Shown here piece by piece: positions 1-27,640 of a stretch of DNA of 64,000 nt (position 1 is its first letter; each line of letters opens with the position of its first letter). This stretch comes from Amphiscolops sp. MND2022. Taxonomy: Eukaryota. The notes under the pieces were generated by a model. The model worked only from the letters and a program-made list of their open reading frames with translations, had not been told where the DNA came from and did not search any database. Both the position numbers and the translations under genes were made by a program. The stretch is from the NCBI GenBank assembly GCA_964187785.1, contig OZ076421.1:42966001-43030000 (forward strand), given 5' to 3'.

Positions 1-2050
1 ACAGTCTTTTAAGTCTTCCTGTCTTTGGAAGTTTTGTTTACACGCTCTAATGGTCACTAATTGTTTTGATTGTTTCTAATAGAATGTCATTCTGTGACAT
101 CATCAGATCAATACAAGTTTTCGACTTGTGTGTGATGGCTATTCGTTTTAATCTATCCCTTTGAGATAATGAGGCTCGGTAAAAAGCAATGGCTTCCACC
201 ACATAACCAGAGTTTTCTTTGAAAGACCGAATTTTGTATGATTTACTCTATTCTGGAGATTTTATGTGTCTGTGATCTCTGTTGTAATGGTCTAACGCCA
301 GAAAAGGCATTCATGTTGCGCGAAAGTGAAAACACGTATCTCTGCTACCAGTTCCAGAACATGACAATTTTTCATCTTCAAATGTTCTGCACAAGATACG
401 TTCTGACACTCAGGGATTGAATCCGGTCGTGATTTCTTTATGACCAGGGATAGGATTTCCTATCTGGGAGGTTTTCTGCTTTTCTCTCTATTCCTGGGTG
501 TCCTGCCAGGAGCCCTGGTTGATGGCGAAGTTCTGCTAAGTACATAGTGGTGGTAGAAAGCGAATGTAAAAGAAAACGTTTATTCAGCAGTTTTGATCAT
601 TTTACAGAGTGATACAAATGAATTACAAGAGGTTTCGCTGACAATGTTATATTATCGACAATGAATAAATTGAAATGACAGACTTTTGAGGCTTTTTGTA
701 CTGTTATGAATATGGAAAAATGACTTTTCGGGATGAAAATAACGTCTTTTCTTGAGACTCTTTTTCGCGCTTATGCCCTAGACAGAAGGTCTTCCTACTG
801 TTCGAAAGTACCAGTCAACCAAACCTAATCTGTCCCGAACCTTCCTGGTTTTCAGGGAAAACTTTCCCTCTTTTTTGTGTACTGAGACTGTAAACCTTTG
901 TGACATTAACATTTAGACATAGACCTTTGAGAAGTTGAAATGAAAGGTTCGAACCGAACTGTCAAAGTTTGAAGGTCAATAACATTCGCAAAAAGAACAA
1001 GTGCAAGCATTCAGTTCATTTTTCGTAGCAGACAGCTTTGCGCTCACTTGTCAAGACTTTGTTGTTTCAAACGTGTTAGCAACATCTTTCGATTGTTATT
1101 TGATGTTACGTAATCGAAACAGCTTTAAAACGATGGCAGAACAACGTTGCCACAACGGCTGAATTCTTCTGCGAATATCGATGTTAGTCAAATTAAGATA
1201 ACTTATTCCGAACACTCTCCAACAATTAACAAACAGAAAATGCTATTCTAACCTGGAAAATAGAATCTAAAATTAATACTTTTTTCTCAATTAAAAAAAA
1301 ACGAAACATTCGTATATATTTGGGCCTATGAGGAATTGAGAAACTCGTGAGTCTGTACCCAAGGATTTTGGGTAATGGCTGCAATCAACATGATTGAAAA
1401 GGTGCTACCTTTGCTCCAAGTCAGAGTTGTACATTTTAACAAGCTGGGAACGGCCAAAGTCGGCGCTATATCTAAGGCTCAAAAAGCGCGAAGCTTTGAA
1501 ATTTGTAAAAAGGTGGACCTTTTGGGCTTTTAGAAACTCCAGTTTGTTGCAAAGTATGAAAAGGGATCCCTTTGAAGACCTTAAAATTTTTTCCAGTAAA
1601 TGAAAAAAATGAGTGCCGAAGAACAGGGGGCCTTTAGCATCTATTCTCTTGCAAAATATTGAAACAAATGAACGGTGTACCCTTTGGTGCAATCCAAAAT
1701 TGTCGTTTTTTTTTTAAGCTGCGGGAAGTTGTTCTGGTCGAATCTTTTCGTTAAGATGTTAAACGATTCAATGGCTAACCTTACCAACAAAGCCTCCTAA
1801 ATCTGGAATTCTGATCAAATCTCAGGACGAAGCAACCAAAAGCTCAAGAAAGTGAAAATTCTTCGAAAAGTATTTGGGAAAACAAAAATGCATACGAATG
1901 AATTCAACACACACTGAAATTGAAACACAAATGTTCCAAATTGAGGCACAAAAACTATGTTTGAAAGTTATCGATAGTTATGCAGAGACAATCATGATGT
2001 GAATAGTAGCAAGGATGAATGAAGAGCGAGATGTCCGCTAATCTCACAAA

Positions 2051-2560
2051 TCAAAGATCAAGTTTGTTGCCAACGCGATGAGTCGGCAAAGATACAACTT
2101 GTTTGAAACCAATTTCTCCTAGGAAGCATTCAGGGCGTGTTGAGTCAGGGGAGTTGAAATCGCCTGTGATAATTGGAGTCTCGGGAGTAATGAATGCATT
2201 TTCCAAGGTTTTCCAAGAAAAGCGAAAGGGTGCAGGCGTGGTAACGATACACTCCAATCACTGAGAGACCTTCATCGTCTAAACGTATTTTTATCATTGA
2301 GTCATGGATTTTGATTGCGCAAGTGGTCTCTGTTGAAAAAACACTCAAGCCCCGGCCTCTGCCTTCTTTCAAATGTCGGCTTTTAACAAACTTCGGATGG
2401 AAGAGGGGATCTGGATAGCTCGTTTCGAGCCATGTTTCAGACTGAAACAGAATGTCGCAAGAATTGATTAGATGATCGGCCTTGAGATCTTCCATATTCG
2501 CATTCAAGGATTGGATATTTAGGCTACAAATGGTGAGTTTACTGGAGTTCATGAAAAGAC
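2051..2560 (-). pseudogene. Apurinic/apyrimidinic (APE/EEP) endonuclease domain at the RepHel C-terminus
   Basis: LTICSLNIQSL, DILFQSETWL, GRGRGLSVF, IITGDFN and PTHRVGNKLDL are the ordered APE motifs. A C-terminal APE domain defines Helentrons. Confidence 0.9.
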
Positions 2561-5500
2561 TTGCTGTCAACGTAGGTGATCTCTCAGACAGCTCAAGAAA
2601 GTCAGACACAACTTTAGCCTCCTCGCTACTGTTTGATCAGAGAGATACCAACGTCCTCATCATCGAATTTAACTAAGACACAATTAATTTGAGAAGAATC
2701 AGGGGAGATAATACCGACGATTGAACGCAGCTGTCCGTTGGTTGAGGAATCTTTGACATCTACATTATAGATCAACATTACTCGGGCTCCCACTTTCAAA
2801 GTGATCAAGTCACTGAAAGCAGTGTCATCAATTTCCCTTGCTTGATTTTGGGTCGGCAACCCACCGGCGAGTTGATAAGACTTTGAAGAAAACACTTGTC
2901 CAGGTAAACTATTCAAGTTCTCCTCGTTGTATCTGTCTACTTCAGCGTTTGTATAGAAAATGCGAGTGGCGCCAATAGGTAGGCTGTGGTCGTTTTTGAG
3001 AACTTGTAAAGATGATAAAATGGTAAGGTCATCTGCGGTCAGAGAAGCAGTTCTAACACGCTTGAGGGTTTCTACCTACTTCAAATCATCTTCTTGCCTA
3101 AAAATAAAAGATCAACACTAAGTAAAATGAATTTTATTAACAGAAAGAAACGATTGAAACTGACCCATGATTAGCGTGGAGGACAACGGAGCGAAAATCC
3201 ATCCAGAGATGGCAGAAATCATAGTAATCGGAATACTTTTGGGCACGAGGTCGTTGGAATATGAAGCGACCACGAACGGGCTTAAGTTGTAAGAGATCAC
3301 CAAAAAGGAGGACAACAACACCACCAAAAATGCGATCAGTCTGCTTTACTTGTTGGAGCATTTCGTGGAGCTGGTAGAATAAGTCGGAGCTCACCATACT
3401 CATTTCATCAATTACCAGTAAGACGAGTTCTTCGAGTTTGTTTCTAATACTGTCGAGTAAACTATCGGCGAGATTGATGAGTTCATCCCCGAAATTGAGC
3501 TTTCAAGGATTGGATATTTAGGCTACAAATGGTGAGTTTACTGGAGTTCATGAAAAGACTTGCTGTCAACGTAGGTGATCTCTCAGACAGCTCAAGAAAG
3601 TCAGACACAACTTTAGCCTCCTCGCTACTGTTTGATCAGAGAGATACCAACGTGCTCATCATCGAATTTAACTAAGACACAATTAATTTGAGAAGAATCA
3701 GGGGAGATAATACCGACGATTGGACGCAGCTGTCCGTTGGTTAGGGAATCTTTGACATCTACATTATAGATCAACATTACTCGGGCTCCCACTTTCAAAG
3801 TGATCAAGTCACTGAAAGCAGTGTCATCAATTTCCCTTGCATAATTTTGGGTCGGCAACCCACCTGCGAGTTGATAAGACTGAAGAAAACACTTGTCCAT
3901 GTAAACTATTCAATTTCTCCTCGTATCTGTCTACTTCAGCGTTTGTATAGAAAATGCGAGTGGCGCCAATAGGTAGGCTGGGATCGTTTTCGAGAACTTG
4001 TAAAGATGATAAAATGGTAAGGTCATCTGCGGTCAGAGAAGCAGTTCTAACACGCTTGAGGGTTTCTACCCACTTCAAATCATCTTCTTACCTAAAAATA
4101 AAAGATCAACACTAAGTAAAATGAATTTTATTAACAGAAAGAAACGATTGAAACTGACCGATGATTAGCGTGGAGGACAACGGAGCGAAAATTCATCCAG
4201 AGATTGCAGAAATCATAGTAATCGGAATACTTTTGGGCACGAGGTCGTTGGAATATGAAGCGACCACGAACGGGCTTAAGTTGTAAGAGATCACCAAAAA
4301 GGAGGACAACAACACCACCAAAAATGCGATCAGTCTGCTTTACTTGTTGGAGCATTTCGTGGAGCTGGTAGAATAAGTCGGAGCTCACCATACTCATTTC
4401 ATCAATTACCAGTAAGACGAGTTCTTCGAGTTTGTTTCTAATACTGTCGAGTGAACTATCGGCGAGATTGATGAGTTCATCCCCGAAATTGAGCTTTCAA
4501 GGATTGGATATTTAGGCTACAAATGGTGAGTTTACTGGAGTTCATGAAAAGACTTGCTGTCAACGTAGGTGATCTCTCAGACAGCTCAAGAAAGTCAGAC
4601 ACAACTTTAGCCTCCTCGCTACTGTTTGATCAGAGAGATACCAACGTGCTCATCATCGAATTTAACTAAGACACAATTAATTTGAGAAGAATCAGGGGAG
4701 ATAATACCGACGATTGGACGCAGCTGTCCGTTGGTTAGGGAATCTTTGACATCTACATTATAGATCAACATTACTCGGGCTCCCACTTTCAAAGTGATCA
4801 AGTCACTGAAAGCAGTGTCATCAATTTCCCTTGCATAATTTTGGGTCGGCAACCCACCGGCGAGTTGATAAGACTGAAGAAAACACTTGTCCATGTAAAC
4901 TATTCAATTTCTCCTCGTATCTGTCTACTTCAGCGTTTGTATAGAAAATGCGAGTGGCGCCAATAGGTAGGCTGGGGTCGTTTTCGAGAACTTGTAAAGA
5001 TGATAAAATGGTAAGGTCATCTGCGGTCAGAGAAGCAGTTCTAACACGCTTGAGGGTTTCTACCCACTTCAAATCATCTTCTTACCTAAAAATAAAAGAT
5101 CAACACTAAGTAAAATGAATTTTATTAACAGAAAGAAACGATTGAAACTGACCGATGATTAGCGTGGAGGACAACGGAGCGAAAATTCATCCAGAGATTG
5201 CAGAAATCATAGTAATCGGAATACTTTTGGGCACGAGGTCGTTGGAATATGAAGCGACCACGAACGGGCTTAAGTTGTAAGAGATCACCAAAAAGGAGGA
5301 CAACAACACCACCAAAAATGCGATCAGTCTGCTTTACTTGTTGGAGCATTTCGTGGAGCTGGTAGAATAAGTCGGAGCTCACCATACTCATTTCATCAAT
5401 TACCAGTAAGACGAGTTCTTCGAGTTTGTTTCTAATACTGTCGAGTGAACTATCGGCGAGATTGATGAGTTCATCCCCGAAATTGAGCTTTCAAGGATTG

Positions 5501-8468
5501 GATATTTAGGCTACAAATGGTGAGTTTACTGGAGTTCATGAAAAGACTTGCTGTCAACGTAGGTGATCTCTCAGACAGCTCAAGAAAGTCAGACACAACT
5601 TTAACCTCCTCGCTACTGTTTGATCAGAGAGATACCAACGTGCTCATCATCGAATTTAACTAAGACACAATTAATTTGAGAAGAATCAGGGGAGATAATA
5701 CCGACGATTGGACGCAGCTGTCCGTTGGTTAGGGAATCTTTGACATCTACATTATAGATCAACATTACTCGGGCTCCCACTTTCAAAGTGATCAAGTCAC
5801 TGAAAGCAGTGTCATCAATTTCCCTTGCATAATTTTGGGTCGGCAACCCACCTGCGAGTTGATAAGACTGAAGAAAACACTTGTCCATGTAAACTATTCA
5901 ATTTCTCCTCGTATCTGTCTACTTCAGCGTTTGTATAGAAAATGCGGGTGGCGCCAATAGGTAGGCTGGGATCGTTTTCGAGAACTTGTAAAGATGATAA
6001 AATGGTAAGGTCATCTGCGGTCAGAGAAGCAGTTCTAACACGCTTGAGGGTTTCTACCCACTTCAAATCATCTTCTTACCTAAAAATAAAAGATCAACAC
6101 TAAGTAAAATGAATTTTATTAACAGAAAGAAACGATTGAAACTGACCGATGATTAGCGTGGAGGACAACGGAGCGAAAATTCATCCAGAGATTGCAGAAA
6201 TCATAGTAATCGGAATACTTTTGGGCACGAGGTCGTTGGAATATGAAGCGACCACGAACGGGCTTAAGTTGTAAGAGATCACCAAAAAGGAGGACAACAA
6301 CACCACCAAAAATGCGATCAGTCTGCTTTACTTGTTGGAGCATTTCGTGGAGCTGGTAGAATAAGTCGGAGCTCACCATACTCATTTCATCAATTACCAG
6401 TAAGACGAGTTCTTCGAGTTTGTTTCTAATACTGTCGAGTGAACTATCGGCGAGATTGATGAGTTCATCCCCGAAATTGAGCTTTCAAGGATTGGATATT
6501 TAGGCTACAAATGGTGAGTTTACTGGAGTTCATGAAAAGACTTGCTGTCAACGTAGGTGATCTCTCAGACAGCTCAAGAAAGTCAGACACAACTTTAGCC
6601 TCCTCGCTACTGTTTGATCAGAGAGATACCAACGTGCTCATCATCGAATTTAACTAAGACACAATTAATTTGAGAAGAATCAGGGGAGATAATACCGACG
6701 ATTGGACGCAGCTGTCCGTTGGTTAGGGAATCTTTGACATCTACATTATAGATCAACATTACTCGGGCTCCCACTTTCAAAGTGATCAAGTCACTGAAAG
6801 CAGTGTCATCAATTTCCCTTGCATAATTTTGGGTCGGCAACCCACCGGCGAGTTGATAAGACTGAAGAAAACACTTGTCCATGTAAACTATTCAATTTCT
6901 CCTCGTATCTGTCTACTTCAGCGTTTGTATAGAAAATGCGAGTGGCGCCAATAGGTAGGCTGGGGTCGTTTTCGAGAACTTGTAAAGATGATAAAATGGT
7001 AAGGTCATCTGCGGTCAGAGAAGCAGTTCTAACACGCTTGAGGGTTTCTACCCACTTCAAATCATCTTCTTACCTAAAAATAAAAGATCAACACTAAGTA
7101 AAATGAATTTTATTAACAGAAAGAAACGATTGAAACTGACCGATGATTAGCGTGGAGGACAACGGAGCGAAAATTCATCCAGAGATTGCAGAAATCATAG
7201 TAATCGGAATACTTTTGGGCACGAGGTCGTTGGAATATGAAGCGACCACGAACGGGCTTAAGTTGTAAGAGATCACCAAAAAGGAGGACAACAACACCAC
7301 CAAAAATGCGATCAGTCTGCTTTACTTGTTGGAGCATTTCGTGGAGCTGGTAGAATAAGTCGGAGCTCACCATACTCATTTCATCAATTACCAGTAAGAC
7401 GAGTTCTTCGAGTTTGTTTCTAATACTGTCGAGTGAACTATCGGCGAGATTGATGAGTTCATCCCCGAAATTGAGCTTTCAAGGATTGGATATTTAGGCT
7501 ACAAATGGTGAGTTTACTGGAGTTCATGAAAAGACTTGCTGTCAACGTAGGTGATCTCTCAGACAGCTCAAGAAAGTCAGACACAACTTTAACCTCCTCG
7601 CTACTGTTTGATCAGAGAGATACCAACGTGCTCATCATCGAATTTAACTAAGACACAATTAATTTGAGAAGAATCAGGGGAGATAATACCGACGATTGGA
7701 CGCAGCTGTCCGTTGGTTAGGGAATCTTTGACATCTACATTATAGATCAACATTACTCGGGCTCCCACTTTCAAAGTGATCAAGTCACTGAAAGCAGTGT
7801 CATCAATTTCCCTTGCATAATTTTGGGTCGGCAACCCACCGGCGAGTTGATAAGACTGAAGAAAACACTTGTCCAGGTAAACTATTCAATTTTTCCTCGT
7901 TGTATCTGTCTACTTCAGCGTTTGTAAAGAAAATGCGAGTGGCGCCAATAGGTAGGCTGGGGTCTTTTTCGAGAACTTGTAAAGATGATAAAATGGTAAG
8001 GTCATCTGCGGTCAGAGAAGCAGTTCTAACACGCTTGAGGGTTTCTACCCACTTCAAATCATCTTGCCTAAAAATAAAAGATCAACACTCAGTAAAATGA
8101 ATTTTATTAACATAAAGAAACGATTGAAACTAACCGATGATTAGCGTGGAGGACAACGGAGCGAAAATTCATCCAGAGATTGCAGAAATCATAGTAATCG
8201 GAATACTTTTGGGCACGAGGTCGTTGGAATATGAAGCGACCACGAACGGGCTTAAGTTGTAAGAGATCACCAAAAAGAAGGACAACAACACCAAAAATGC
8301 GATCAGTCTGCTTTACTTGTTGGAGCCTTCCGTGGAGCTGGTAGAATAAGTCGGAGCGCACCATACTCATTTCATCAATTACCAGTAAGACGAGTTCTTA
8401 GAGTTTGTTTCTAATACTGTCGAGTGAACTATCGGCGAGATTGATGAGTTCATCCACGAAATTGAGCT
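2503..8468. repeat. Six-copy direct tandem array, unit ~994 bp
   Basis: Unit starts (ttcaaggattgg) at 2503, 3502, 4496, 5490, 6484 and 7478. The inner four copies are nearly identical. Confidence 0.97.
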
Positions 8469-8680
8469 GGAACGTTGAGTGTAACGCATTGCCATTCACA
8501 AGCGAAGCGGCCATTTCTGTCGGAGCTACAACCAATGCTTTTGGTTTGTCAAGTTCTGAACCACCGGAAGCAAATATAGACGATACGTAATTCATACTTG
8601 AGTTTGAGTTTTGTTTTCCCAGTACCCGCTTCGGACGATAATGAGTGGAGACGTTGGATTGCTACCACGTAGGAACTGGT
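2626..8680 (-). pseudogene. Pif1-family helicase domain of RepHel (internally amplified; C-terminal motifs missing)
   Basis: Frameshifted Walker A (EAGTGKT near 8620), VVAPTEMAASLV, ALHSTF, VIDEMSMV, FGGVVVLLFGDLLQLKPV, LKVGARVMLIYNVDVKDSLTNG. No QFPL/TIHK/SR motifs appear before the APE domain. Confidence 0.9.
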
Positions 8681-9589
8681 GGGCAAAATTTGCCACCACA
8701 TCAAAAACTTTGCGTTGCTCTTCATGCAATGATCGGACAGACTGTCTAATTTCTGTTGGTAGCAAAATCTTTATTGTCGGGATGTTACTGCCTATGACAG
8801 GAAAATCGTCAGTCGAGAAAAGACCGGGGTGTCTGTGGGTAAATTCCGGATTCTGCAGCTCATCCAAGTCTTCGTCGTTCATTTGCTCACCTTCGGGATC
8901 TAAGCAGTCACCAATATGAACAGCCCGGTAGCCAGATGGCTCAATAGATGCGAGGCACTCTTCAATCAAGTCATTTTGTTGAGTAAAAGGAAAAATTTTT
9001 AGCGCTTGTTCTGATTGATTAGCTCTCTCTTGTCGTGGTATAACTTGATCGAGTCTTCTGGAGAATGCCGATGGAGTTCATCTTGGAAGGTACAACAGAC
9101 ATTCGGGGTAAATGAATTCATGGTTCTCAGTTTTTCTTTTGGAATCATGTAAGCTCAGAACACAGGGCCTCTTCCTCAAACGCATTACACCGGCATTATC
9201 TTTTAATTTTACAAAAAGGGGCAATTCGGCAGCATTTCGCAGGAACTCGCTATCGGATAGATCTTCATCTTGCGGGTTAGAAGTATAGTTGGTCACAAAT
9301 TCTGCTGAACAGATATTATCAAGCGCGGCTGGTCGTTTGCCATACTTTTCATGAATGGTTGGTGTCCACAAGTACGCTCCTTCTCGGCCCTCAATTTGAA
9401 CAGTATCTTTAAGACGGTCTTCATCGGTCCACTTCAGAAATTGATACCTGTTTCCAGGAATTCCAGTTGTTACAAAAACTGTAGTTATGTTGGAATCTTT
9501 CAAATGCATATTCTTCAGCAGTCCGTAGGTTGCTCCACAAGCTCCAATTTGCCTGTGTTTAAGATAAACGCTTTTCTAAACTCTCACCA

Positions 9590-10690
9590 TTCCATGCACC
9601 GATTTTTGTTGGTCCGTTTGTTGTTTGATAGTTTGCTTGAGGACGTCGGTGATGCCGGTTTCATCCTTCGAGTAATAGCCACAAATGTAAGTGACAACAG
9701 CATAGGAATCGCAACAAAATTGCAGGTCCATATTTCCATTCCATGCAAGCATCCACTTCCGATTGTAGTTGTTGATGTACAACTCATTTAAATTACGTTT
9801 CAGGATGACAATTTTTCCCCTGGTGGATTTGGAGAGCGCGGAATGATAGGCGTCACGAGAGACGTCGAGCTTTTGATAGAACTCTTGGAAAGTTGTGGGT
9901 GGGCTGGTACTCTCTAGCAGAATTTTCGCTTTGTGGAGAAAATGGCGACATTGTTCAACTGACTTTTTATCTTCCGATTCAGGCTGCTGAGCTATTAAAG
10001 TTAATTCTGAAGGGAACTTCGGAAAACCAAAACGGCTAGAGGAGGATTTTTTCATTCAAGATTTCGTATGATGATGGGTCTGTTTTTGACGCAAAGGATC
10101 GTCCTCAGACGGTAACTCGCAGGTGATGAAATTGTCATTCAAACAGGTTATCAACTCTGCTTCCGAAAGTAGGCTACTATTTTGCAGGAACTTTTCATCC
10201 AACCAAAAGAAGCCGTGAATGTGGGCCATTCCTCGTAACTGCATATCAACTCGGTAAGTATAAAACAACACCGGTACGCGCAACCCTCGTATTTTGACAT
10301 TACGATTTTCTGGATAAAAGTCTTTTGTTGAAAATCCTCGAGACATGTACAACGAATTGACGGAGGAAGCTGGCTCTTTCTACAGGTTTGGATTGAAGGA
10401 AAATTTCCAAGGGTTGACCGTCAACGAAAACTTCGTAATCTACGCCATGCTTGTTAAAAGTTGTTTCAAGACTGATGGTATCCCCTTGTGACTTCAAAAT
10501 TGTCACAAAAACTTCGGGCCATCTCATTTCAGCACACGACAGGGTGAAGAAGTACTGGAACGGACCTAGTTGTTTCACTTTCGCGAGCAACTCATTCCGA
10601 GCAACTCTCCAGTACTGGCTGGTGCCACGAATACGTTGGAACACAGTTTGTATATCTTCTTGACTAACTTCGATGGTATCGTTATCCAAT
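9590..10690 (-). pseudogene. HUH/Y2 rolling-circle replication initiator (Rep) domain
   Basis: FFTLSCAEMRWPE, YRVDMQLRGMAHIHGFFW (HUH), QTHHHTKS, RFGFPKFP, INNYN...WNGNMDLQF...YICGYYSKDE (two-Tyr motif). Confidence 0.92.
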
Positions 10691-11819
10691 CGCTCGGTCT
10701 TTCCTTTGCGAAAAAAATGTCGCTTTGACGCTCGAGCTGTTCTCGTTCAACTCGCTGCTGAGCAGCAAACAAATAAGCGCTGTTTTCTGCGAAGCGACTG
10801 TTTTTCTTTGGTTATACGTTGACTAAAGTATTGCTCGAAACTGATTTTGACCACCCTTGTATCAGTTAATGTAAATTTGCCGGACGGAAAAAACAAGGGA
10901 ATGATTTTGCTTCAAAGTCCACATTGGATAACCAGTTGCTGTTGGTCTGATGTTTTTTATCTCCTGGAGCGGCAATAATAGTTTCTGAAAGTACTTTGCG
11001 AACAACTCCATAATTCGAAATGACATGAGCAGCAGCATTATGAGGAATGAGACAAGTATCCAAACAATCATCTTTATCAACCTGAACTGCTTCTTGATCA
11101 TCATTTTCTGTTTCTGTCTGCTCCCCAACGTTAGTAAGAGCAGCTTCATCGAAAGTGAAATTTTGATTTGAAACAACATCACGGTAAAAAGGATTCCCTA
11201 TTAACTGCAGATAGGTTAACGCCCTGAGTAACACGTGCGGTCTAACAAGCGCTTCAGAGTGGATATTCTTGAAATCTTTGGGGCGTTTGAATTGTACGTT
11301 GACGAGAAGGGAATCATCCAAAGATCGTGGTAGTACCTGCGCTGTTGTTTGATGATCAATACTAGTGAGGGGTACGTTTATCACCTTGTCCTTCAGCGCA
11401 GGCATGCGTGATTTCGGAAGCTTGAAAATTTTCATCAACAACAGATCTTTGGCTATCAATTGCATTTCGAAGTCCGACAGGTTAGGTTCTTCATGATTTG
11501 GTTCAATGGTAAGACCATTCAGAGTAGACAAGCTCGGCTTTTCGCCCTTTCGCAGACATCGATAACAGTAGTGACACATCACTTTTGAGCCGGTAAGGTT
11601 TTCTGCACTGATGCTTCTCGCAACAACGGTGTCATCAAGTTTAGAAAAAGTGTTTTCCGACAATTGTATAACACCATTCTCGAAGTGAAGTCGTTCACAG
11701 CAAATAAATTCGAATGTTAAACCCAGGCACATTCCACGGAATTCTTTCAAAAGTTCATCGAATTGTTTCAAAGACTTGCACAATCGATATTTCAGTTTGT
11801 TTGTTTGATTGTTTGAGCG

Positions 11820-12350
11820 AGTTTTGGTATTTCACGCGGAGAGGTTCCTTCAAACATTCACGGTATTTGATCTGCAAGGGTTCCTTCAAGGAAGTCTGGT
11901 ATTTTCTTCTAAGAGATCTCTTCAAACTGTCTTGGTACTTGCTTTTCAATGACTCTTTCAAACTCTCTTGGTATTTTCTTTTTAAGGACAGTTTGAACAC
12001 TTCTTGGTACTTCCTTTTCAAAGACTGTCGCAGACTTTCTTGGTACTTCCTTCTCAATGAGTGTTTCAGCTTTTCATCGTACTTCTCAATGATTGTTTCA
12101 AACTAGTTTCGTACTTAATTTTCAACGACTGCTTCAACTTTTCTTCGTACTTTCTTTTCAACGACGATTTCAGCTTTTCTTCGTACTTTCTTTTCAACGA
12201 CTGTTCCAACTTCGTACTTTCTTTTCAATGACTGTTTCGTCTTCGTACTTTTTTTCAATGACTCTTTCAACCTTTCTTGGTACTTTCTTTTCATTGACTT
12301 TCATTGTTTCTTGGTACTTTCTTTTCAATGACTGTTGCAAACTTTCCCGG
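11820..12350 (-). repeat. Coding 12-aa (36-bp) repeats SLKRKYQExLKx in the RepHel N-terminal part
   Basis: ORFs 11755-12057 and 12194-12382 show repeated KRKYQE units, i.e. a charged coiled-coil-like linker. Confidence 0.85.
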
Positions 12351-12899
12351 TCTTTCAATACCGAAGGCTCCTTTGCGATCAACCCAGCAGATGACTGAGT
12401 CTAATGTTGTTTGATTGTATCTTGCATGGTACTATTCAGACCGTTTTAATCGCCTCCTTTCAGCTAAAACTGTCTGATAAGAGGTCTTAAAAGAGCTTCG
12501 GGGAAAATGCTGAAAGCCGTAATGTGAGTTTGAAAGGTTGCTGAGCACTTCACACACGGTTTGTCAAGAAAAGTTTTGACATCAATGGCACATGCAGGTT
12601 GCAGAAAGGCACTTTCAGAGGACTCATCACATTTTCAGATCCCGAAATGTTTTCCCACAAGCTTTGCAAGAAAAGCACATTCAGAAGACTGCAGGTTTGG
12701 AGAAGCTTGACAATCTCCCAAACCTCCCAAACGTTGGATTGACGGTGACTTTTTTCCACAATTAAACTTTTCATATGTGCCTACAGGTTGCGAAAACGGC
12801 TGGCTTTCCCTGGCGTCTATGAGGGTAACAGCAGCATCTCTATGAACTAATGAATGTTTTGAAGAACGGTAGACAGAAGACTGGAAGCATTCTATATGT

Positions 12900-13374
12900 T
12901 GAATATTGGCTTTCCAAGGGAAATGCAGGTTACAGAAACGTAAGGAACTTGAACCGACTTCAGTTAATTGATAACAATCCAGAGTTTGAGATGACATCTC
13001 CATCACAAAGGCTTTGATTCCGTTGAACACTGCTGACTCGTATTGGTACTGGTATGACAATTAATAGCACTTAATATCACCGGTGTACCCCGGACATGCG
13101 TATGAAACCAGCCGAAAACAATTTTCCCCGAAAGTTGGGTGCATAAATAATGCATGAAAACTGCCGAATCCTGGTTATTGATGCCTTTGTCCTCGACGAA
13201 TACTTCACTACTAGATTGAGTTGGAAGGATGACATCTGTAATAGTGTAGTCATTGACACCATCTTTTACAGCGAGCAAAAAAGCGAGAGTTTCCACGAGC
13301 TCTCCTTGGTTATTGAAATTTGAAGTCTCAACATCGGTAAGAAAACGAAGGGCTTCTTTTGCCAAAACGATCAT
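12900..13374 (-). pseudogene. JAB1/MPN (JAMM) metalloprotease domain, AMSH/STAMBP-like, within the Helentron polyprotein
   Basis: VETLAFLL...YTITDVILPTQ...GWFHTH...LSAINCHT, then (after a 1-nt frameshift) YQY...CYQLTEVG. This parallels AMSH VETCGIL...FTITHVLIPKQ...GWIHTH...LSSVDLHT...FKLTDHG. The third Zn ligand is Asn (AAT) rather than Asp. Confidence 0.8.
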
Positions 13375-16711: not shown

Positions 16712-18525
16712 CTGTCAAACACGATATAACAAAAAATCTCCAAGATATCATTAATCTTGAAATCAGTGTTGGCACAGGATCGTTTCCTCAGTCAAAAATT
16801 ACAGCAGACATCTTAATGGTGTTTACAAACGACAATGTATAAAGACAAACTATACATTATTACCAACAACGCAAAGTGACATTTTATGCAATAGAACAAA
16901 ATTATCGAAGTTTAGTGAAAAGTTTCAAACTGTTAATAATGATCCAACACTAACAAATAAACCGAAAAGAACTTTTGAACTTCATGTCAAGTGCTATTTA
17001 AACACAACTTGTATGAGTTGTGAAGAAGAAAAGAAATCCAGTCCGTTAAATAATACGATAACGAAAGCATAAACGTTGAACAATGCCAAAGGGAAAAGAA
17101 ATTACTGCAATATCCAGTCACACAGCGACTGGATGTTGCAGGGTGGAAAGCAACTATTGGAGGGAAGGAAGATGCGTTTAATAATGCTCCGAAAGTCTGT
17201 TAACATCTGTGTCCCGAGCCACAGAAGTGTTTAGTAGATTGACACGTTCGTCAGGATTAGTGGGTGCTTCCAGAAGGTGTTGCGGGGGACTGTCAAACAC
17301 GATATAACAAAAAATCGCCAAGATATCATTAATCTTGAAATCAGTGTTGGCACAGGATCGTTTCCTCAGTCAAAGATTACAGCAGACATGTTAATGGTGT
17401 TTACAAACGACAATGTATAAAGACAAACTATACATTATTACCAACAACGCAAAGTGACATTTTATGCAATAGAACAAAATTATCGAAGTTTAGTGAAAAG
17501 TTTCAAACTGTTAATAATGATCCAACACTAACAAATAAACCGAAAAGAACTTTTGAACTTCATGTCAAGTGCTATTTAAACACAACTTGTATGAGTTGTG
17601 AAGAAGAAAAGAAATCCAGTCCGTTAAATAATACGATAACGAAAGCATAAACGTTGAACAATGCCAAAGGGAAAAGAAATTACTGCAATATCCAGTCACA
17701 CAGCGACTGGATGTTGCAGGGTGGAAAGCAACTATTGGAGGGAAGGAAGATGCGTTTAATAATGCTCCGAAAGTCTGTTAACATCTGTGTCCCGAGCCAC
17801 AGAAGTGTTTAGTAGATTGACACGTTCGTCAGGATTAGTGGGTGCTTCCAGAAGGTGTTGCGGGGGACTGTCAAACACGATATAACAAAAAATCGCCAAG
17901 ATATCATTAATCTTGAAATCAGTGTTGGCACAGGATCGTTTCCTCAGTCAAAGATTACAGCAGACATGTTAATGGTGTTTACAAACGACAATGTATAAAG
18001 ACAAACTATACATTATTACCAACAACAGTATGATTTGCTCAGTGTGGAAAACACACAAGTGGAAACCGTGAACTATTTATGCACGGAAATTACATGTTAA
18101 ACAACGCAAAGTGACATTTTTATGCAATAGAACAAAATTATCGAAGTTTAGTGAAAAGTTTCAAACTGTTAGTAATGATCCAACACTAACAAATAAACCG
18201 AAAAGAACTTTTGAACTTCATGTCAAGTGCTATTTAAACACAACTTGTATGAGTTGTGAAGAAGAAAAGAAATCCAGTCCGTTAAATAATACGATAACGA
18301 AAGCATAAACGTTGAACAATGCCAAAGGGAAAAGAAATTACTGCAATATCCAGTCACACAGCGACTGGATGTTGCAGGGTGGAAAGCAACTATTGGAGGG
18401 AAGGAAGATGCGTTTAATAATGCTCCGAAAGTCTGTTAACATCTGTGTCCCGAGCCACAGAAGTGTTTAGTAGATTGACACATTCGTCAGGATTAGTGGG
18501 TGCTTCCAGAAGGTGTTGTGGGGGA
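16712..18525. repeat. Tandem triplication, unit 578 bp (third copy 658 bp)
   Basis: ctgtcaaacacgatataac starts at 16712, 17290 and 17868. The third copy has an extra 79 nt at 18027-18105 flanked by aacaac. Confidence 0.95.
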
Positions 18526-19741
18526 CTGCTGGATCCTTCCCGATCATTTCCGGGGGGAATGCTGGATGCTTCCCGATTGTTTTGGGGGGCACTGCTGGAT
18601 GCTTCCCGGTCGTTTTCAGGGGAATGCTGGATGCTTCGCGATTGTTTTTGGGGCGACTGTATGATGCTACTTCTTCAGGTGGAAGAGTTATTGTGTGGCT
18701 TGTGGAATGATAATAAGCAGCATCTGTTGCTGGCCGCATCATTGAGGAAGAAGTACCGGCAGTATAAGAGTATGGGGCTCCGTACATCAGTGATTTCTGA
18801 TGGTCACTCAAAGCAGTAACAGGCATTAAGCTACAAATATGGTAGCTGAAACTTCCTGAGGTAACGTGATTCTCTTCATCGTTCGCTGGTTTAAACCAAA
18901 CTACAACTCGGAAGCCTTGACAAGCTTCCACTGATGCAGCAACTCGGGTTACCGCTTCTTCCATTTCATAGACATCGATGTCCTCGCTGCAGAGGGACTT
19001 TGCCAAAACTGAAGAATGAACGAAAACTCTTGTGGCGTTAGCAGACGTCGTCGCCAGTGACACTATCATTTAATTCTTCACAAGTAAAACTTATGCTTAA
19101 AGCCCAGTGCTTCTTCGATTCGGCTACTAAACAACCACAGCTGCTGCCGTCCACTTGACCATCACACATTCTTCCTTTACAAATGTTTTCTTTCGGTACA
19201 GCATGGCAAACATCGAAAGCTGAAGCTTTAAAATCAAAGAAAACATAGCTGGCAGTACTGACGTCACTTTGTGGCATCAAAATTTGTATAACCTTTCGCA
19301 GGGAACTAGAGGGTCTCCGGTAGATATCAGCACGTTCTGCGTTCCCTTCAACAAACCCACAGCTTTTAGAGACAAAACCGAAACAGGAAGTCCTGGTTCC
19401 ATGACTTTTTCCAGGCTGAGAAGACGTTTCGACTCTTCTGGGGTCTTTGTGATCGTCAGCAGTACGTGTTGTGTCCCCTCAACACCCAATACAACAAACC
19501 TATCGTAGTTGACAACCTCCTGGAGTCGTACTTTCTGAAAAGCACGGAACGATTTCGAATAGTTTATGCGCTTCTGACAAGCTGCGGCATACAAGAAAAC
19601 ACAACGATTTCGGAATCTTCCTTTCAACGATGAATCACCATCAGTGAAATCGTGGTATTCTGCGATTCTGAATTGGCGCTCCACTTCCGCCTGCACCTCC
19701 ACAAGACCTTTTCCAATTTTGATGTAACCGGGTAACGGCAT
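18467..19741 (-). pseudogene. Accessory ORF of the Pif1/GIY-YIG unit (Cys-cluster protein; two frameshifts)
   Basis: Fragments 19277-19741, 19038-19280 and 18467-19069 join in order. They contain YDRFVVL, CKGRMCDGQ..SCGC, GFRVVVWFKP..HICSLMP and C-terminal GKHPA(V/F)PP repeats encoded by a ~33-bp minisatellite (18526-18660). Confidence 0.6.
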
Positions 19742-19944: not shown

Positions 19945-22200
19945 TCAGGTATTGGAGACAAAGGTCAACGTTCCACCCAGAACAAGAATAGGTGAACCAA
20001 AATCACCAGACTGCGTCATGATGCATAACTCATCCATCATTGGATCAACTCGGAAACCAAACAACGATTCTTTCGACAACATAATTCTTTTACTGTCCGA
20101 TACAAAGTTAAAGGCGAAAGCAGCTAGACTCCAAGGTCTCAAATGCTGCTTAGCCGTGAGACTCGGAATGTCACCAGAGTTGTGACGACCCAACTCTTCT
20201 AATAAATTGTTGTTTGTGTGGTTTCCCCGATGAAAATAGCTTTGAAGGAACTGTCACGCAGACTCACCAGGAGGTAAACGAAGCCGTTCTCTACTCTCGG
20301 GATTTCTGTGACAATGGGTTTCATCAAAAGATTCGGGATAGCAAAATAGTAGCCTGCTGTTGTTTTCATTCTATGTAAAGACTGTAATCTTTGGTCAACC
20401 AGCAATTCCTTGTTTTGTTGTTTTTCTGAGAATAGTTGTAATAGCAGCTGAGGTATCCTCACTAAAAAAAAGCAGCCTAATAGTTACAAAAATAAATACC
20501 ATTTGGCTAGAAACAGTAGCGAAAACACATAAAATCCTGATTTAATGGCAACTAATTTCACTTAACTCACCGAAGACCGACGAAATGTACATTACACAAC
20601 TGCTTTACACGGCTAACAATCACATACAGCTGCGAAGCCAACCGGAGACAGTAATCGGCTTCAGTCAACGAAATTTGTGTTGCTATTTTGTCAAAGGTGT
20701 CGCCCATCAATTTATGGCAAGTAGAGGCAACATAGTTTGTGAAAGGAAGTTGCGTCCGTCGCAAAGAAGAAACCCAAGACTTGCTGAATGAAGTAATTTT
20801 TTGAATTCTTATTTTAGGCCATTCTTTGAATAGTTCTTGCTCCATCAAGTTGTCCCACAGGAATGAATTAGTTGGTGCAACGTAAGCCACTATCGATCCA
20901 CCTGAAGAAGAGGGCAGTTCTGCTAGCACAGCAACTTGTCCTTGCGACAAATTAGACATATTGACAGTTAATCTCAGCAGACAGTGCTCGTGAAGTAATA
21001 GTTTACGTGGCTCTCTACACAAGATACATAGAAGCATTTTCAGTAGCATTCGTCCAATGATTTGAAAAACTGGGACACATTTCATCGAAAGCATTGAGCA
21101 CAACTGTAGGAACGCCCGAGTTTCTAATACTATTCTGATACAAAGTGACCGCCTCCCGTTCGGCTCGTTTTTTGCCGAAAACTTTCACCACAGTCTTATG
21201 ACCGAGGTTGGCCCAAGTGTCGACGAAGTTGCAGCTAGTTTTCAACGTGTCCACAATAAATGCTATGTCTTCCTCGAGTATTGGTTTCTTAGACATGGCA
21301 TTCAGTACCGCCTGTCCTCTAAAATCGTTCATGCGTACAAAATGGCGCAAAAAGTAACAATCAAAATCGAATATTAGTCGTGAACTGAGAAAAAAGTGTC
21401 CCCGTTAGCAAGCACCATGACGCCTCCAAAACGTAGGCTGCTGTTGCATAACTTTTGTAAAACTAAATCCATTATAGCCAGTAATTCAACGCTAATAAGA
21501 CCAATTTCCTGGACAAGTAAAATGTCAATAGACAACAAATCATCAGCTTTCTGACTCTCACGTTCCAATTTCTTCATTGCTTTCTCAGCTGCAGCCGACA
21601 CATCATCATTGGCATTAACTACAATACCGAAAAGACGGTGAATGTGCTCATAACGGAAAATTGAAGCACGGCGAGAAGCTAAGCTAGTAATGTAGCAATT
21701 GAGACCATTCAACAAAGCGAATAGTAAACTTATTGATGTAACGTTGCTTTTTCCTGAACCAGATTTCCCAAGAATAATCTGAAGCTTCAGCTGCCGCATC
21801 GAATAGTTAGGTATTTTGCGGTAAAGGTAATCAAGTGTTTCACACTGTTCTGAAAATGATAAACTCGATTGACATGTCATGATAAATATCATACGATAAT
21901 CTTACGAGTTTCAAATAGGCTATAATATGGAAACCGCAGTTATGATCCCGCACAAATAACAGTTAATCTACTTCCGATATAAAACTTGAGGAAAACTTAA
22001 AACTTTCGTATTTGAAGTAGACACCGCACGAAGTTGAAACACTCTTCTCCTTAAATAGCGGAGCGCAAAAAGTAATGCATCATCAAAATGAGAATAAGAT
22101 AGAGGAAAAAATGAAGCTTGAATAAGAGATACCGTAATACGACTAGACAAGTGAAAAACTATCAAAAGCTGATAAAACTCCTGCGCATGAAAGAGTTCAT
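19945..22200 (-). pseudogene. Second Pif1-family helicase with C-terminal GIY-YIG endonuclease (Helitron2-like; no Rep domain seen)
   Basis: ILGKSGSGKS (Walker A), ILLVQEIG (degenerate Walker B), FGGVMVLANGD, QLPFTNYVASTCHKLMGDT, QLYVIVSRVK, then GFVYLLVS...IFIGET...LGRHNSG...RPWSLAAF (GIY-YIG). Confidence 0.85.
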
Positions 22201-22402: not shown

Positions 22403-23528
22403 TTAGACATTACAAATCGTCATCACTTGGAACACTTCGTTGTAGACAGCACCTGCAAGTGCAGCAGATCTTTTCGATTTACGCGTCGAAGTTTTTCCTA
22501 CGGCGTGAATTGGTTGCTTGTTCTTTTTACTGATATTTGCACAAGAACCAGAATTTGGTATCTTCTGACCAAGAGCGATATGGCCTACATTGTCAGCAGT
22601 AAGTGATTCTCTGTCAGCAGGAGCAATGGATTCAATGTTACCATCAGTTAGTGATGCTTTGAAATTGTCATCAATGGAGTTTTCTTGGAGAGAGAACGTG
22701 GCTTTCCGCGATTTAGCAAAAGAACATGAAGTAGAAGGCTCTTCTGATTTGCGATCCAAGGACTGAGTTGGCTCATCTTCTATTGGTAAGTTAGCTATAA
22801 GATCATCAAGGGAACTACCGCCGAGCGACAGCATAGACTTGGTGTCAGATATTTCAGTACGTTTCATCACTTGTAGTTGTTTTCTTCTCTTGAATTTCTT
22901 TCCAGCAGATATTTGAGAGGTTGGAGGATTTGTAATGACTCTTTGGATATGGTTTATATCTCTGCAGTTGCCTTCAGATGATTGCAGGTGAGGACTGAGC
23001 ATTGGATGCATGAAAAGCTGAAGTAAAAACCCTTGGTGAAGCAGAAAATGACTTCATAGCAGGTGGGTATAGGACTCGTGGAGACACTGTGTGAGTTGTG
23101 TTGGAAAGTTTCTTCGCAGGAAACTGAAGAAGCTCCGTTGTTTCTCAATTTTTGCGCGCTTTTCGTGAGAAGCAAATTATGCTGTCTTGAAGAATCGCGA
23201 TGGATGTTTCTCGCGTTGGACAGGTTTTTCAAGGCTTCACATAATTGGCACGAGAACGCTCAGTTGACTGGACTGTAGCAAGCAAATCGTTGCGCTCTTT
23301 GCTAATTTTCCCAGCTATTTTTTTCGCATGAAGAAGGACCTTGTCAATGGCGGCCACCAAGGTTTTCTCACCATCATACAGCCGAGGGACCACTTTATTC
23401 GAGACAGAAGGTCGTTCCGCGATGGCATAAGAGAAGGAAGCTTTGACAGAAAGCAGTATGTCATGAATAGTTTCGATTTCTTCGAGAGAATTGTTCAGTA
23501 GAGGCAACAATTTCCAATCAGTAGACAT
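22403..23528 (-). pseudogene. Frameshifted low-complexity ORF, unknown function (upstream-most ORF of the block)
   Basis: ATG 23528 (MSTDWKLLPLLNNSLEEIE...) has a tttttttcag acceptor 8 nt upstream. It continues through ORF-track pieces 22954-23232 and 22403-23011. No recognisable domain. Confidence 0.4.
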
Positions 23529-23576
23529 TTGGTTCACTGAAAAAAAGCCAATGAAAAGGCTGACGCTTGAAATAGG

Positions 23577-23945
23577 AACAAGCCGGGAACGGCCCAAGTC
23601 GGCGCCATATCCAAGGCTCAAAAATAGCATAAGGACTTCAAATTTCCAAGTATTGGTGAATTGGGAACACTTTTACGAAAAAATTTTTCGAAAAAAGTCC
23701 CACAATGCCGAAAAAACTCAAAGGGAGGACCCTTTGGTCTCGTCCAGTATTGTATGTTACGCGGGAAACCTTTTTGGTTCAGTTCTTTGGGCCACCAGGT
23801 ACATTTTGGCGTCTTCTGTAAATTTTGTAGAACTTTTGGTAGAACTATTTTGGTCAGTCCAGGTCTATTTTGGTCTTTAAAAAAACACTGACGAAAAGCC
23901 ATGACTATAGTCGACTCTTTTCTTCAGAAAAGCGCCGACTAAAAA
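23577..23945 (-). mobile_element. HINE family 1 (non-autonomous Helentron) copy
   Basis: aacaagccgggaacggcccaagtcggcgcc...aaagcgccgactaaaaa: asymmetric IRs AGTCGGCGC/GCGCCGACT, a GCCG-GGAA-CGGC terminal hairpin and A/T-run ends. Confidence 0.8.
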
Positions 23946-26458: not shown

Positions 26459-26980
26459 AACAAGCCGGGAACGGCACAAGTTGGCGCTACATCTAAGGCT
26501 CAAAAATAGCAAAAAGGACTTTAATGTGTCAAGTGTTCTCTTCTACAGTACCCGCGTGAGGAAAAAATTGATGAAATTCCGAATTTTTCGAATTTTTTTG
26601 GTCTCCGGTTAGTCGCATAGTGCCGAAAAATGTAAAAGGGGGCCTTTGGGAGTTTTTGAACATCCATTCTTTTGCAAAATAGGAAAAAATGAAGGTTGGA
26701 CCCTTCGGAGACATTTAAAAAATTGCGAAAAAAGTCTCACCAAGCCGAAAAAAAACCTGCACAAAAACTTTTTGTTCACGGGTGGGACTCGAACCCACGT
26801 CCTTCTGCTTGGCAGACATCAAAAACTATCCTAATTAACCTCTATGCTAAGTGGCAGTAGAAGTTACAAGTGTGACAGTTAGTGGACGCAGCTTACATAG
26901 CTTATGAAATCTGTCACTTCGTTGGTCTTGAAAAAAAGTCACTGCTATAGTCTGCGTTTTCTACAAAAATCGTCGACTAA
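26459..26980 (-). mobile_element. HINE family 1 copy carrying a tRNA-derived cassette
   Basis: Both termini are present. It interrupts a repeat whose empty-site version is at 28180-28400. A/B-box cassette at 26775-26856. Confidence 0.85.
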
Positions 26981-27180: not shown

Positions 27181-27640
27181 AACAAGCCGGGACCGGCCCA
27201 AGTCGGCGCCATATCCAAGGCTCAAAAATAGCAAAAAGACTTCCAAGTGTCAAGTACTCTTTTACAGTACTTGAAAATCGAAATTTTTTGAAAAAAAATT
27301 TTTCGAAAAAATTACATACTCAAAAAAATGGACCGAGTGGCGCGCCGGGGCTCGCTAGCGCGAGCCCCTGGCGCGCTAAAGTCTCACAATGCCGAAAAAC
27401 TGAAAGGGAGGACCCTTTGAGGTTTTTCAACATCCATTCTGTCGCAAAACATGAAAAAATTGAAGAACACAAAAATTTTCATTTTCGGGAAAAAATCTCA
27501 CAATGCCGAAAAAAACTGACAGGGGGGACCCTTTGGGATTTTCAACATCCATTCTGTCGCAAAACATCAAAAAAAATGTAGGGGGACCCTTTGGGGAAAT
27601 TTTTTTTCGAAAAAAAGTCTCGCAGTGCCGAAAAAAAATG
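27181..27640 (-). mobile_element. HINE family 1 copy (5'-truncated) with GC-rich internal hairpin
   Basis: aacaagccgggaccggcccaagtcggcgcc terminus, repeated gggggaccctttggg modules, and a hairpin at 27340-27376. Confidence 0.75.

Follow-up and report, generated by a model that had tools for sequence, protein, structure and literature searches.

The MPN domain remnant

The 64,000-nt stretch of contig OZ076421.1 of Amphiscolops sp. MND2022 analysed here (positions 42,966,001 to 43,030,000; the window) carries on its minus strand, at 13374–12770, a decayed AMSH-like JAMM/MPN+ domain. With a probability of about 0.88, this segment is the decayed N-terminal module of the polyprotein gene of a dead Helentron (an HLE2 rolling-circle transposon), a module that in intact relatives is a conserved AMSH-like JAMM/MPN+ domain and presumably a ubiquitin isopeptidase.

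The first part of the domain (13051–13374, minus strand) is defined by an open reading frame (ORF), by tblastn and by structure and family matches. It begins at the start methionine of a 123-residue ORF (13374..13003, minus strand) that reads ...ELVETLAF...GWFHTHVRGTPVILSAINCHT, with GWFHTH followed by S-A-I-N-C-H-T. Near 13051 a one-base frame slip interrupts the domain, which resumes in the frame of the ORF at 13060..12635 (minus strand) as YQYQYESAVFNGIK...DCYQLTEVG...RFC...IQHIEC. This second part (12770–13060, minus strand) matches the relatives P0003 from residue 108 onward and P0037 over residues 122–266, and contains an Ins-2-like region with a conserved C...QH..C. When P0003 was aligned to the window by tblastn, its residues 1–107 fell on 13374–13051 with 60% identity, residues 108–279 on 13051–12533 and residues 285–315 on 12518–12426, in three frames in all. 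Downstream of the domain, tblastn of P0003 residues 108–315 and frame translations place a linker at 12426–12769 (minus strand) with the remnant of a C2H2 zinc finger (FSCKACGKTF). The finger is broken, and the linker also carries an in-frame stop at 12635–12637 and more frame changes; P0003 itself has a weak zf-C2H2 match.

The catalytic glutamate of the window copy lies in ELVETLAF, aligned with ...GIETCG of AMSH-LP, and the H-x-H zinc ligands lie in GWFHTH. The S-x-x-D feature, which supplies the oxyanion serine and a zinc ligand, is S-A-I-N in the window, with asparagine for the aspartate that is found in all 22 complete relatives. An earlier, sequence-only reading of this DNA had listed the glutamate of VET, GWFHTH, the serine and YQLT, all of which are present on the minus strand, and had correctly given the last zinc ligand of this copy as asparagine.

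Taken alone, the 123-residue piece is a weak match to Pfam JAB (E=0.0032; 17.7 bits, below the cut-off of 22.5 bits), and a single-sequence search of solved structures gave modest values, the best being STAMBP (3e-5) and AMSH-LP (1e-3). When 1.84 billion representative proteins were searched exhaustively with HMMER, 38 matches at E<=1e-3 were obtained, the top three at E=6e-37 to 2.5e-32 with 56–64% identity, a similarity of the piece to its family that is far beyond chance. Given the weak Pfam and structure matches of the window piece, the case for an MPN domain rests on the exhaustive protein search and on the family profiles described below. Word-index protein searches, of limited reach, gave two matches for the MPN region of P0037 and nine short metagenome matches for profile A2.

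The transposon around the domain

The element reads, on the minus strand, as the MPN domain, the zinc-finger remnant, a basic repeat linker, DUF6570, an HUH Rep, a Pif1 helicase, an AP endonuclease and a 3’ terminus. The framework for this order is P0037, a single uninterrupted ORF of 2,152 residues from a metagenome contig that contains MPN (residues ~57–257), DUF6570, Helitron_like_N, PIF1 and Exo_endo_phos domains. By tblastn, the window is colinear with P0037 throughout, from the MPN domain (residues 67–266) to the AP endonuclease (residues 1932–2151), in blocks at 13347–12770, 11750–10704, 10908–8676, 8619–8134, 3069–2647 and 2594–1973.

All of the following parts lie on the minus strand. 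Within the polyprotein linker, at 11897–12345, Tandem Repeats Finder and self-BLAST identified basic KRKYQE-type repeats of 12 residues (36 bp) in approximately 12 copies, with the 36-bp repeats themselves spanning 11930–12345. DUF6570 follows at 10866–11783 (Pfam DUF6570 E=9.8e-13; tblastn of P0037 residues 371–736); HLE2 elements or Helentrons typically have this zinc-finger-like region on the N-terminal side of Rep. Frameshifted HUH Rep remnants and the Rep-helicase connector occupy 8676–10908 (tblastn of P0037 residues 669–1474); Helitron_like_N is matched at E=6e-9 in the window ORFs, and the H-I-H motif is found in the ORF at 10056–10352. The Rep region contains many further lesions. An N-terminal part of the Pif1-type helicase, with the Walker A motif GTGKT, was located at 8134–8619 (Pfam PIF1 E=1.2e-4; tblastn of P0037 residues 1501–1664) and a C-terminal part, corresponding to the 2B domain region, at 2647–3069 (tblastn of P0037 residues 1674–1816). 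Self-BLAST and repeated ORFs show that a 994-bp piece of the helicase is tandemly repeated at 2500–8468 in approximately six copies of 96–98% identity. This six-fold repeat is an internal amplification within the dead element, not a series of separate insertions. The AP endonuclease remnant, of the exo-endo-phosphatase type, lies at 1973–2594 and aligns by tblastn to P0037 residues 1932–2151 (E=1.7e-13), the region of P0037 that matches Exo_endo_phos. The position claimed for the MPN domain by the sequence-only reading, colinear with Rep, Pif1 and AP endonuclease remnants and N-terminal to the KRKYQE repeats, is thereby borne out.

The window copy is dead. It could not carry out deubiquitination, because it combines asparagine for the aspartate ligand with frame slips, stops and the six-fold duplication of the helicase.

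Intact relatives and mobile copies

A search with the DUF6570-Rep part retrieved 120 related Helentron proteins. By local hmmsearch with the MPN profile, at least ten distinct full-length Helentron ORFs of 1,858–2,305 residues (P0037, P0049, P0051, P0052, P0053, P0054, P0056, P0063, P0070 and P0084) have an N-terminal MPN domain that scores 147–253 bits, and the other ~110 proteins gave no intermediate scores. Like P0037, P0049 (2,165 residues) and P0053 (1,858 residues) are uninterrupted; three assemblies encode an identical P0053 protein, and P0049 recurs unchanged in two, including a Tara Oceans scaffold. The MPN domain is thus in frame with the Rep-helicase in other copies, in P0037, P0049, P0053 and the seven further ORFs, as the sequence-only reading implied.

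At the three P0053 loci (L008, L009 and L010) the AP endonuclease is a separate 245-residue ORF, 79 nt past the 1,858-residue MPN-Rep-helicase ORF. The arrangement is identical in the three assemblies and may reflect an intron or a genuine two-ORF layout. Separately, P0004 (1,673 residues) and P0011 (580 residues) show 12 and 7 repeated partial matches, respectively, to the central MPN domain (query residues ~41–112), which suggests tandemly reiterated MPN fragments on long contigs.

Evidence that the domain moves with the transposon came from L003 and L004, two contigs of one European Nucleotide Archive sample, on each of which JAB, DUF6570, Rep, PIF1 and AP endonuclease lie on one strand. 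The 97% identity of the two contigs is confined to an 11.4-kb unit (L003:6516–17927) with unrelated flanks, and the MPN start lies 3.5 kb inside this repeated unit. The unit begins at its 5’ end with TTTTT-AGTCGGCG... and finishes at its 3’ end with ...CGCCGACT...GCCGTTCCCGGC..TTGTT, such that the boundaries are T-runs, AGTCGGCG and CGCCGACT form subterminal inverted repeats, and a short GC palindrome precedes ...CTTGTT. Subterminal inverted repeats, a 3’ palindrome and T-rich boundaries are the hallmarks of Helentrons (PMC4067079). In L003 the MPN ORF and the linker/DUF6570 ORF are in one frame with a single stop between them, and further on the window reads straight through a frameshift that is common to L003 and L004. 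Because the L003 ORFs share a frame and the window is free of the shared frameshift, the lineage of the window and L003 descended from a continuous polyprotein. The L003 stretch homologous to the KRKYQE repeats also aligns to an offset position in L004, which suggests internal repeats in the linkers of these copies too.

The same unit fixes one end of the window element. At 1438–1500 (minus strand) the window contains a Helentron 3’ terminus, comprising CGCCGACT, the remnant of a short GC-rich palindrome and ...CTTGTT, with 89–90% identity over 63 bp to L003:17865–17927, the exact end of the L003/L004 unit. This match places the 3’ end of the element at approximately 1438. Coding DNA of the window and this unit is only ~65% identical, and the far higher identity of the terminal 63 bp is therefore consistent with selection on the recognition and termination signal of Rep. 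No recognisable terminus had been seen between the MPN domain and the Rep, Pif1 and AP endonuclease remnants in the sequence-only reading, and no Helentron terminal motif was found in the window between 1468 and 23586.

At the other end, L003 and L004 show both termini of the unit and the window copy shows a Helentron 3’ end only (1468–1438). The L003 5’ motif occurs in the window solely at 56901 on the plus strand, and no 5’ end of the MPN element was identified. The window region homologous to the 5’ part of L003 is 25592–22430 (minus strand). It includes a possible upstream part of the element, an ORF of unassigned function at 22430–23529 (minus strand) that is colinear with L003:8380–9403 by tblastx and blastn. 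The counterpart ORF, L003:8396–9403, lies ~1.6 kb upstream of the L003 MPN start, and the start codons of the two ORFs align. Pfam scanning of this conserved ORF gave no match in the window (23529–22430) or in L003 (8396–9403), and it may be a second gene of the window’s Helentron family. A foreign Helentron 3’ end, at 23607–23577, directly precedes the window ORF.

AMSH-like identity and selection

A family profile was built from 30 MPN domains and compared with known MPN proteins. The E-values were 5.9e-22 for AMSH-LP, 2e-19 for STAMBP, 1e-18 for Sst2, 1e-8 for Rpn11, 2e-8 for CSN5 and 3e-5 for BRCC36. An AlphaFold (AF2) model of P0003:1–215 reached a predicted local distance difference test score (pLDDT) of 92.1 and a predicted template modelling score (pTM) of 0.86. 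In a Foldseek search with this model, ranks 1–24 among Protein Data Bank (PDB) entries were all AMSH, AMSH-LP or Sst2, with template modelling (TM) scores of 0.71–0.81 by target, a probability of 1.00 and E=5e-14. By profile and by predicted fold, the family is therefore closer to AMSH than to Rpn11, CSN5 or BRCC36. An ESM Atlas look-up returned generic, mostly archaeal JAB clusters only. The expected match to an MPN/JAMM profile thus stands for the family (AMSH-LP at roughly 6e-22) and for the fold, and is weak for the window piece against Pfam JAB, where the score stays below the cut-off.

The clades of MPN carriers are 25–36% identical to each other in the 22 complete domains. Despite this divergence, the HxH pair, the serine, the aspartate, the histidine two residues past the aspartate (D+2) and a later cysteine, histidine and cysteine are invariant in 22/22. 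The glutamate is present in 21, the exception being P0051, for which the alignment breaks up over the N-terminal part. The family consensus accordingly has the H-x-H...S..D arrangement that the sequence-only reading had proposed to look for. The last four invariant residues (His D+2, Cys, His, Cys) form a putative second zinc site in which, by alignment only, the final cysteine lies one position past the AMSH histidine. In the alignment they correspond to the ligands of the second, structural zinc site of AMSH-LP, namely the histidine after the aspartate and the Ins-2 ligands. The family also has its own conserved V-x-D-x-G-I stretch in Ins-1, and a longer Ins-2.

Between P0037 and P0049, the proportion of non-synonymous differences (pN) is 0.127 for MPN, 0.138 for DUF6570, 0.150 for Rep, 0.173 for the AP endonuclease, 0.195 for the helicase and 0.261 for the linker. 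Synonymous sites are saturated in this pair (proportion of synonymous differences, pS, 0.6–0.8), and the ratio of non-synonymous to synonymous rates (dN/dS) for MPN, ~0.11, is nominal. Because MPN has the lowest pN of all domains, it is, by this comparison, under purifying selection at least as strong as that on Rep and the helicase.

These results bear on whether the segment could be a host pseudogene derived from STAMBP, or a recent non-functional capture, that merely adjoins the transposon. Helitron-like elements often capture host gene fragments, and the window domain is indeed broken and devoid of its aspartate ligand. Against this stand the absence of cellular AMSH proteins from the 38 sequence matches (0/38) and the architecture of cellular AMSH-type proteins, which are 19–25% identical and carry the MPN domain at the C-terminus. 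Many intact polyproteins, moreover, include the transposon domain in frame, and its divergence mostly follows that of Rep. It also has the lowest pN of any domain and lies within the transposed unit. On these grounds the explanation is considered highly improbable and was rejected.

Exchange with OTU in the N-terminal slot

In a tree of the DUF6570-Rep region the MPN carriers occupy four places. The window and L003 group together (100/100) as sister (91/91) to P0037, P0049 and P0051; P0056, P0024, P0052, P0008, P0053 and P0054 form an all-MPN clade; P0063 and P0070 form the third place; and P0084 pairs with P0082 (100/99) within a clade whose members have N-terminal OTU domains. P0084 and P0082 are 65% identical over 1,816 residues, starting at residues 289 and 218, respectively, and their N-terminal 217–288 residues are unrelated. 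The N-terminus of P0084 is an MPN domain and that of P0082 an OTU domain with DGDCFFH and HFEPI boxes, which fit the catalytic patterns DG(N/D)CFFH and HFE.I. The OTU assignment in P0082 rests on four weak Pfam matches at the same position and on alignment A3, which shows the DGNCFF and HFE.I boxes; in solved structures, searched with the single sequence, this domain found no recognisable match.

The tree of the MPN domains follows the Rep clades with one exception, the MPN domain of P0084, which groups with the P0037 clade (91/87). This grouping suggests that the MPN module was transferred between lineages. The same search showed that fish Helentrons carry VTD and that amphioxus and sea-urchin Helentrons carry OTU, and the fish elements with VTD fall in the same Rep tree. 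Since the module that takes the place of MPN is an OTU with its catalytic Cys and His boxes intact, the two modules are likely to share an enzymatic role. The suggestion that deubiquitinases have been recruited repeatedly to one slot is supported by the MPN/OTU swap between P0084 and P0082; the general idea is not new, having already been stated for VTD and OTU (PMC9741609).

Proposed function

In active copies the MPN domain would be a zinc-dependent isopeptidase that removes ubiquitin, perhaps from K63-linked chains. It would probably act on the transposase or on host factors present where the DNA is nicked, single-stranded or under repair, and it would do the job performed by OTU, VTD or USP modules in other Helentrons. 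More tentative is the wider proposal, to which we give well under even odds, that an old Helentron clade encodes an active AMSH-like metallo-deubiquitinase, of the only non-cysteine class of deubiquitinase, in the N-terminal slot used by OTU, VTD and USP, with the module exchanged between lineages by recombination. If AMSH-type K63 specificity has also been kept, all Helentron deubiquitinases would have the removal of K63 chains in common, which would single out K63 ubiquitin signalling at nicked or single-stranded DNA as the host response that these transposons have to silence.

Several observations weigh against the assignment of the segment as the remnant of an AMSH-like isopeptidase module of a Helentron. 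The intact relatives are known from metagenome contigs and assemblies. In the window, the MPN start is separated by ~9 kb of other DNA from the upstream ORF that possibly belongs to the same copy. A conserved glutamine of the family aligns, by our reading, with the phenylalanine of AMSH-LP just before the Ins-2 histidine, presumably the aromatic residue that AMSH-family enzymes use beside the second zinc site; structures of Sst2 F403 mutants are among the Foldseek matches. K63 specificity is consequently not simply transferable from AMSH and cannot be assumed for these domains. For most of the transposon domains the Pfam JAB score falls short of the curated cut-off, for which reason domain surveys may have missed the MPN clade. 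Lastly, the spacing from HxH to the serine is eight residues (H-V-R-G-x-x-C-G-F-S-S-x-D) against the canonical seven of the textbook JAMM motif, ExnHxHx7Sx2D (PMC9313428), and HMMER places a one-residue gap in AMSH-LP at this point.

The non-canonical x8 spacing could also speak for an MPN domain that is integral to the transposase but not a deubiquitinase, serving a structural or regulatory function, like the Jab1/MPN domain of Prp8 on Brr2, or some other role of its zinc site. Prp8 Jab1/MPN bound to the Brr2 helicase does form the second tier of fold matches (E ~1e-10). MPN- scaffolds typically lose their zinc ligands, and in this family Glu, HxH, Ser and Asp show no or almost no variation between lineages of only 25–36% identity. 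The domain is, moreover, swapped with an OTU protease that retains its catalytic Cys and His boxes. A role other than deubiquitination of this kind is therefore judged improbable.

Somewhat less improbable, though still unlikely, is that the domain is an active JAMM isopeptidase with a substrate other than ubiquitin, such as NEDD8, another ubiquitin-like modifier or the transposon’s own polyprotein. CSN5 is a JAMM deneddylase, the VTD domains of Helentrons also cleave NEDD8 substrates (PMC9741609), and the V-x-D-x-G-I insertion in Ins-1 and the replaced aromatic residue of Ins-2 could be read in the same direction. In sequence and fold, however, the family is 13 orders of magnitude nearer AMSH than CSN5 or Rpn11, and the modules with which it is exchanged belong to ubiquitin-directed families (OTU, and VTD according to PMC9741609).

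Other repeats and elements in the window

The 22-nt Helentron 3’-terminal motif occurs ten times in the window at up to three mismatches, against 0 expected, at places including 23586–23607, 26468–26489, 27190–27211, 52071–52092, 55756–57291 and 61463–61484. At 55756, 56302 and 56850 it recurs with a period of 546–548 bp, with 5’-end-like sequence within ~10 bp after each occurrence, and an exact 5’ motif lies at 56901. The repeats at 55756–57291 resemble short non-autonomous (HINE-like) derivatives arrayed head to tail. A second and different Pif1-like helicase remnant (PIF1 E=2.9e-5 at 21374–21892) lies at 19945–22200 (minus strand), in the interval that separates the MPN start from the upstream ORF, and probably stems from a further Helitron-like family that inserted as a nested element. 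Three identical 52-residue ORFs with starts at 17076, 17654 and 18312 lie within 17076–18470 (plus strand), a tandem repeat of 578–658 bp, which is adjoined by 33-bp repeats at 18497–18668.

Comparison with known systems

The nearest known systems are Helentrons with OTU modules. They are the same class of element, with DUF6570, an HUH Rep, Pif1, an AP endonuclease, subterminal inverted repeats, a 3’ palindrome and T-rich boundaries, and their protease module likewise lies upstream of Rep; the OTU domain of P0082 stands at the exact position of the MPN domain of its sister P0084. The difference lies in the enzyme, OTU being a papain-like thiol protease and MPN a zinc metalloprotease of unrelated fold. 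To our knowledge, the OTU domains of Helentrons were noted for some twenty years without a functional test. Their presence, on which the sequence-only reading had relied, is long established in the literature (Thomas et al. 2014, PMC4067079) and is seen again in the P0082 clade. The HELIANO survey counts 20 additional domains as stable parts of Helitron-like elements, with OTU, UCH, Peptidase_C48 and Herpes_teg_N among those named in its main text, and reports DUF6570 upstream of Rep to be nearly confined to HLE2; JAB and MPN are absent from that main text (PMC11417382).

In Helentrons with a herpes tegument-like VTD module (Erven et al. 2022, PMC9741609), a deubiquitinase is similarly fused to the polyprotein of Rep-helicase and AP endonuclease, with its catalytic residues conserved. 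These VTD deubiquitinases have been shown to be active, cleaving K48, K63 and K11 chains and NEDD8, and it has already been proposed that Helitrons need a deubiquitinating activity that different classes of deubiquitinase can supply (PMC9741609). VTD is a cysteine protease with assayed activity, whereas the JAMM module is mechanistically unrelated to it and is known here from sequence. No VTD or OTU domain was detectable in the MPN carriers scanned with Pfam, nor in the precomputed Pfam lists of the others.

Among cellular enzymes, AMSH/STAMBP, AMSH-LP/STAMBPL1 and S. pombe Sst2, the K63-specific endosomal JAMM deubiquitinases, are the best profile and structure matches of the Helentron MPN domain. 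They have in common with it the motifs P-x-Q, G-W-x-H-T-H, S-S-x-D-x-H-T and L-T-x-x-G, and their second zinc site, formed by the histidine two residues past the catalytic aspartate and the Ins-2 ligands, has a putative counterpart in the Helentron domain. The Helentron domain differs in its 21–26% identity, in one extra residue between HxH and the serine, and in its location at the extreme N-terminus, whereas AMSH has a C-terminal MPN domain with an N-terminal MIT domain and STAM-binding region. No match to MIT was found in the scanned MPN carriers, and AlphaFold DB clusters yielded only cellular AMSH-type proteins with a C-terminal MPN domain and 19–25% identity. The Helentron MPN domain is not an AMSH orthologue. 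Prokaryotic and phage JAB proteins, including RadC-like JAB, also place an MPN-fold metalloenzyme on a mobile element; in a viral structure library their TM scores were ~0.4 with 10–23% identity, and they differ further in having no AMSH-type insertions and a non-eukaryotic context.

That Helentrons carry different classes of deubiquitinase (OTU, VTD and USP) is already known, and what appears to be new is the JAMM metalloprotease module. In agreement with the sequence-only reading, a full-text literature search, whose scope did not extend to Repbase or Dfam, turned up no paper that describes JAMM, JAB or MPN in a Helitron or Helentron. The finding bears on why Helentrons carry deubiquitinases at all; the activity of VTD has been known since 2022. 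Now that this position is seen to hold a third enzyme, mechanistically unrelated to the others, and because MPN swaps cleanly with OTU between sisters that are 65% identical, it becomes hard to uphold that these modules are passenger captures; their common factor would then be chemistry, the removal of ubiquitin. Strict K63 specificity is the norm among AMSH-type enzymes, and the linkage preference of the MPN module could reduce the number of ubiquitin signals to be considered for rolling-circle transposition. Relative to the AMSH family itself, the Helentron domains add a divergent and compact AMSH-like clade, set apart by its x8 spacing and its His/Cys/His/Cys second site.

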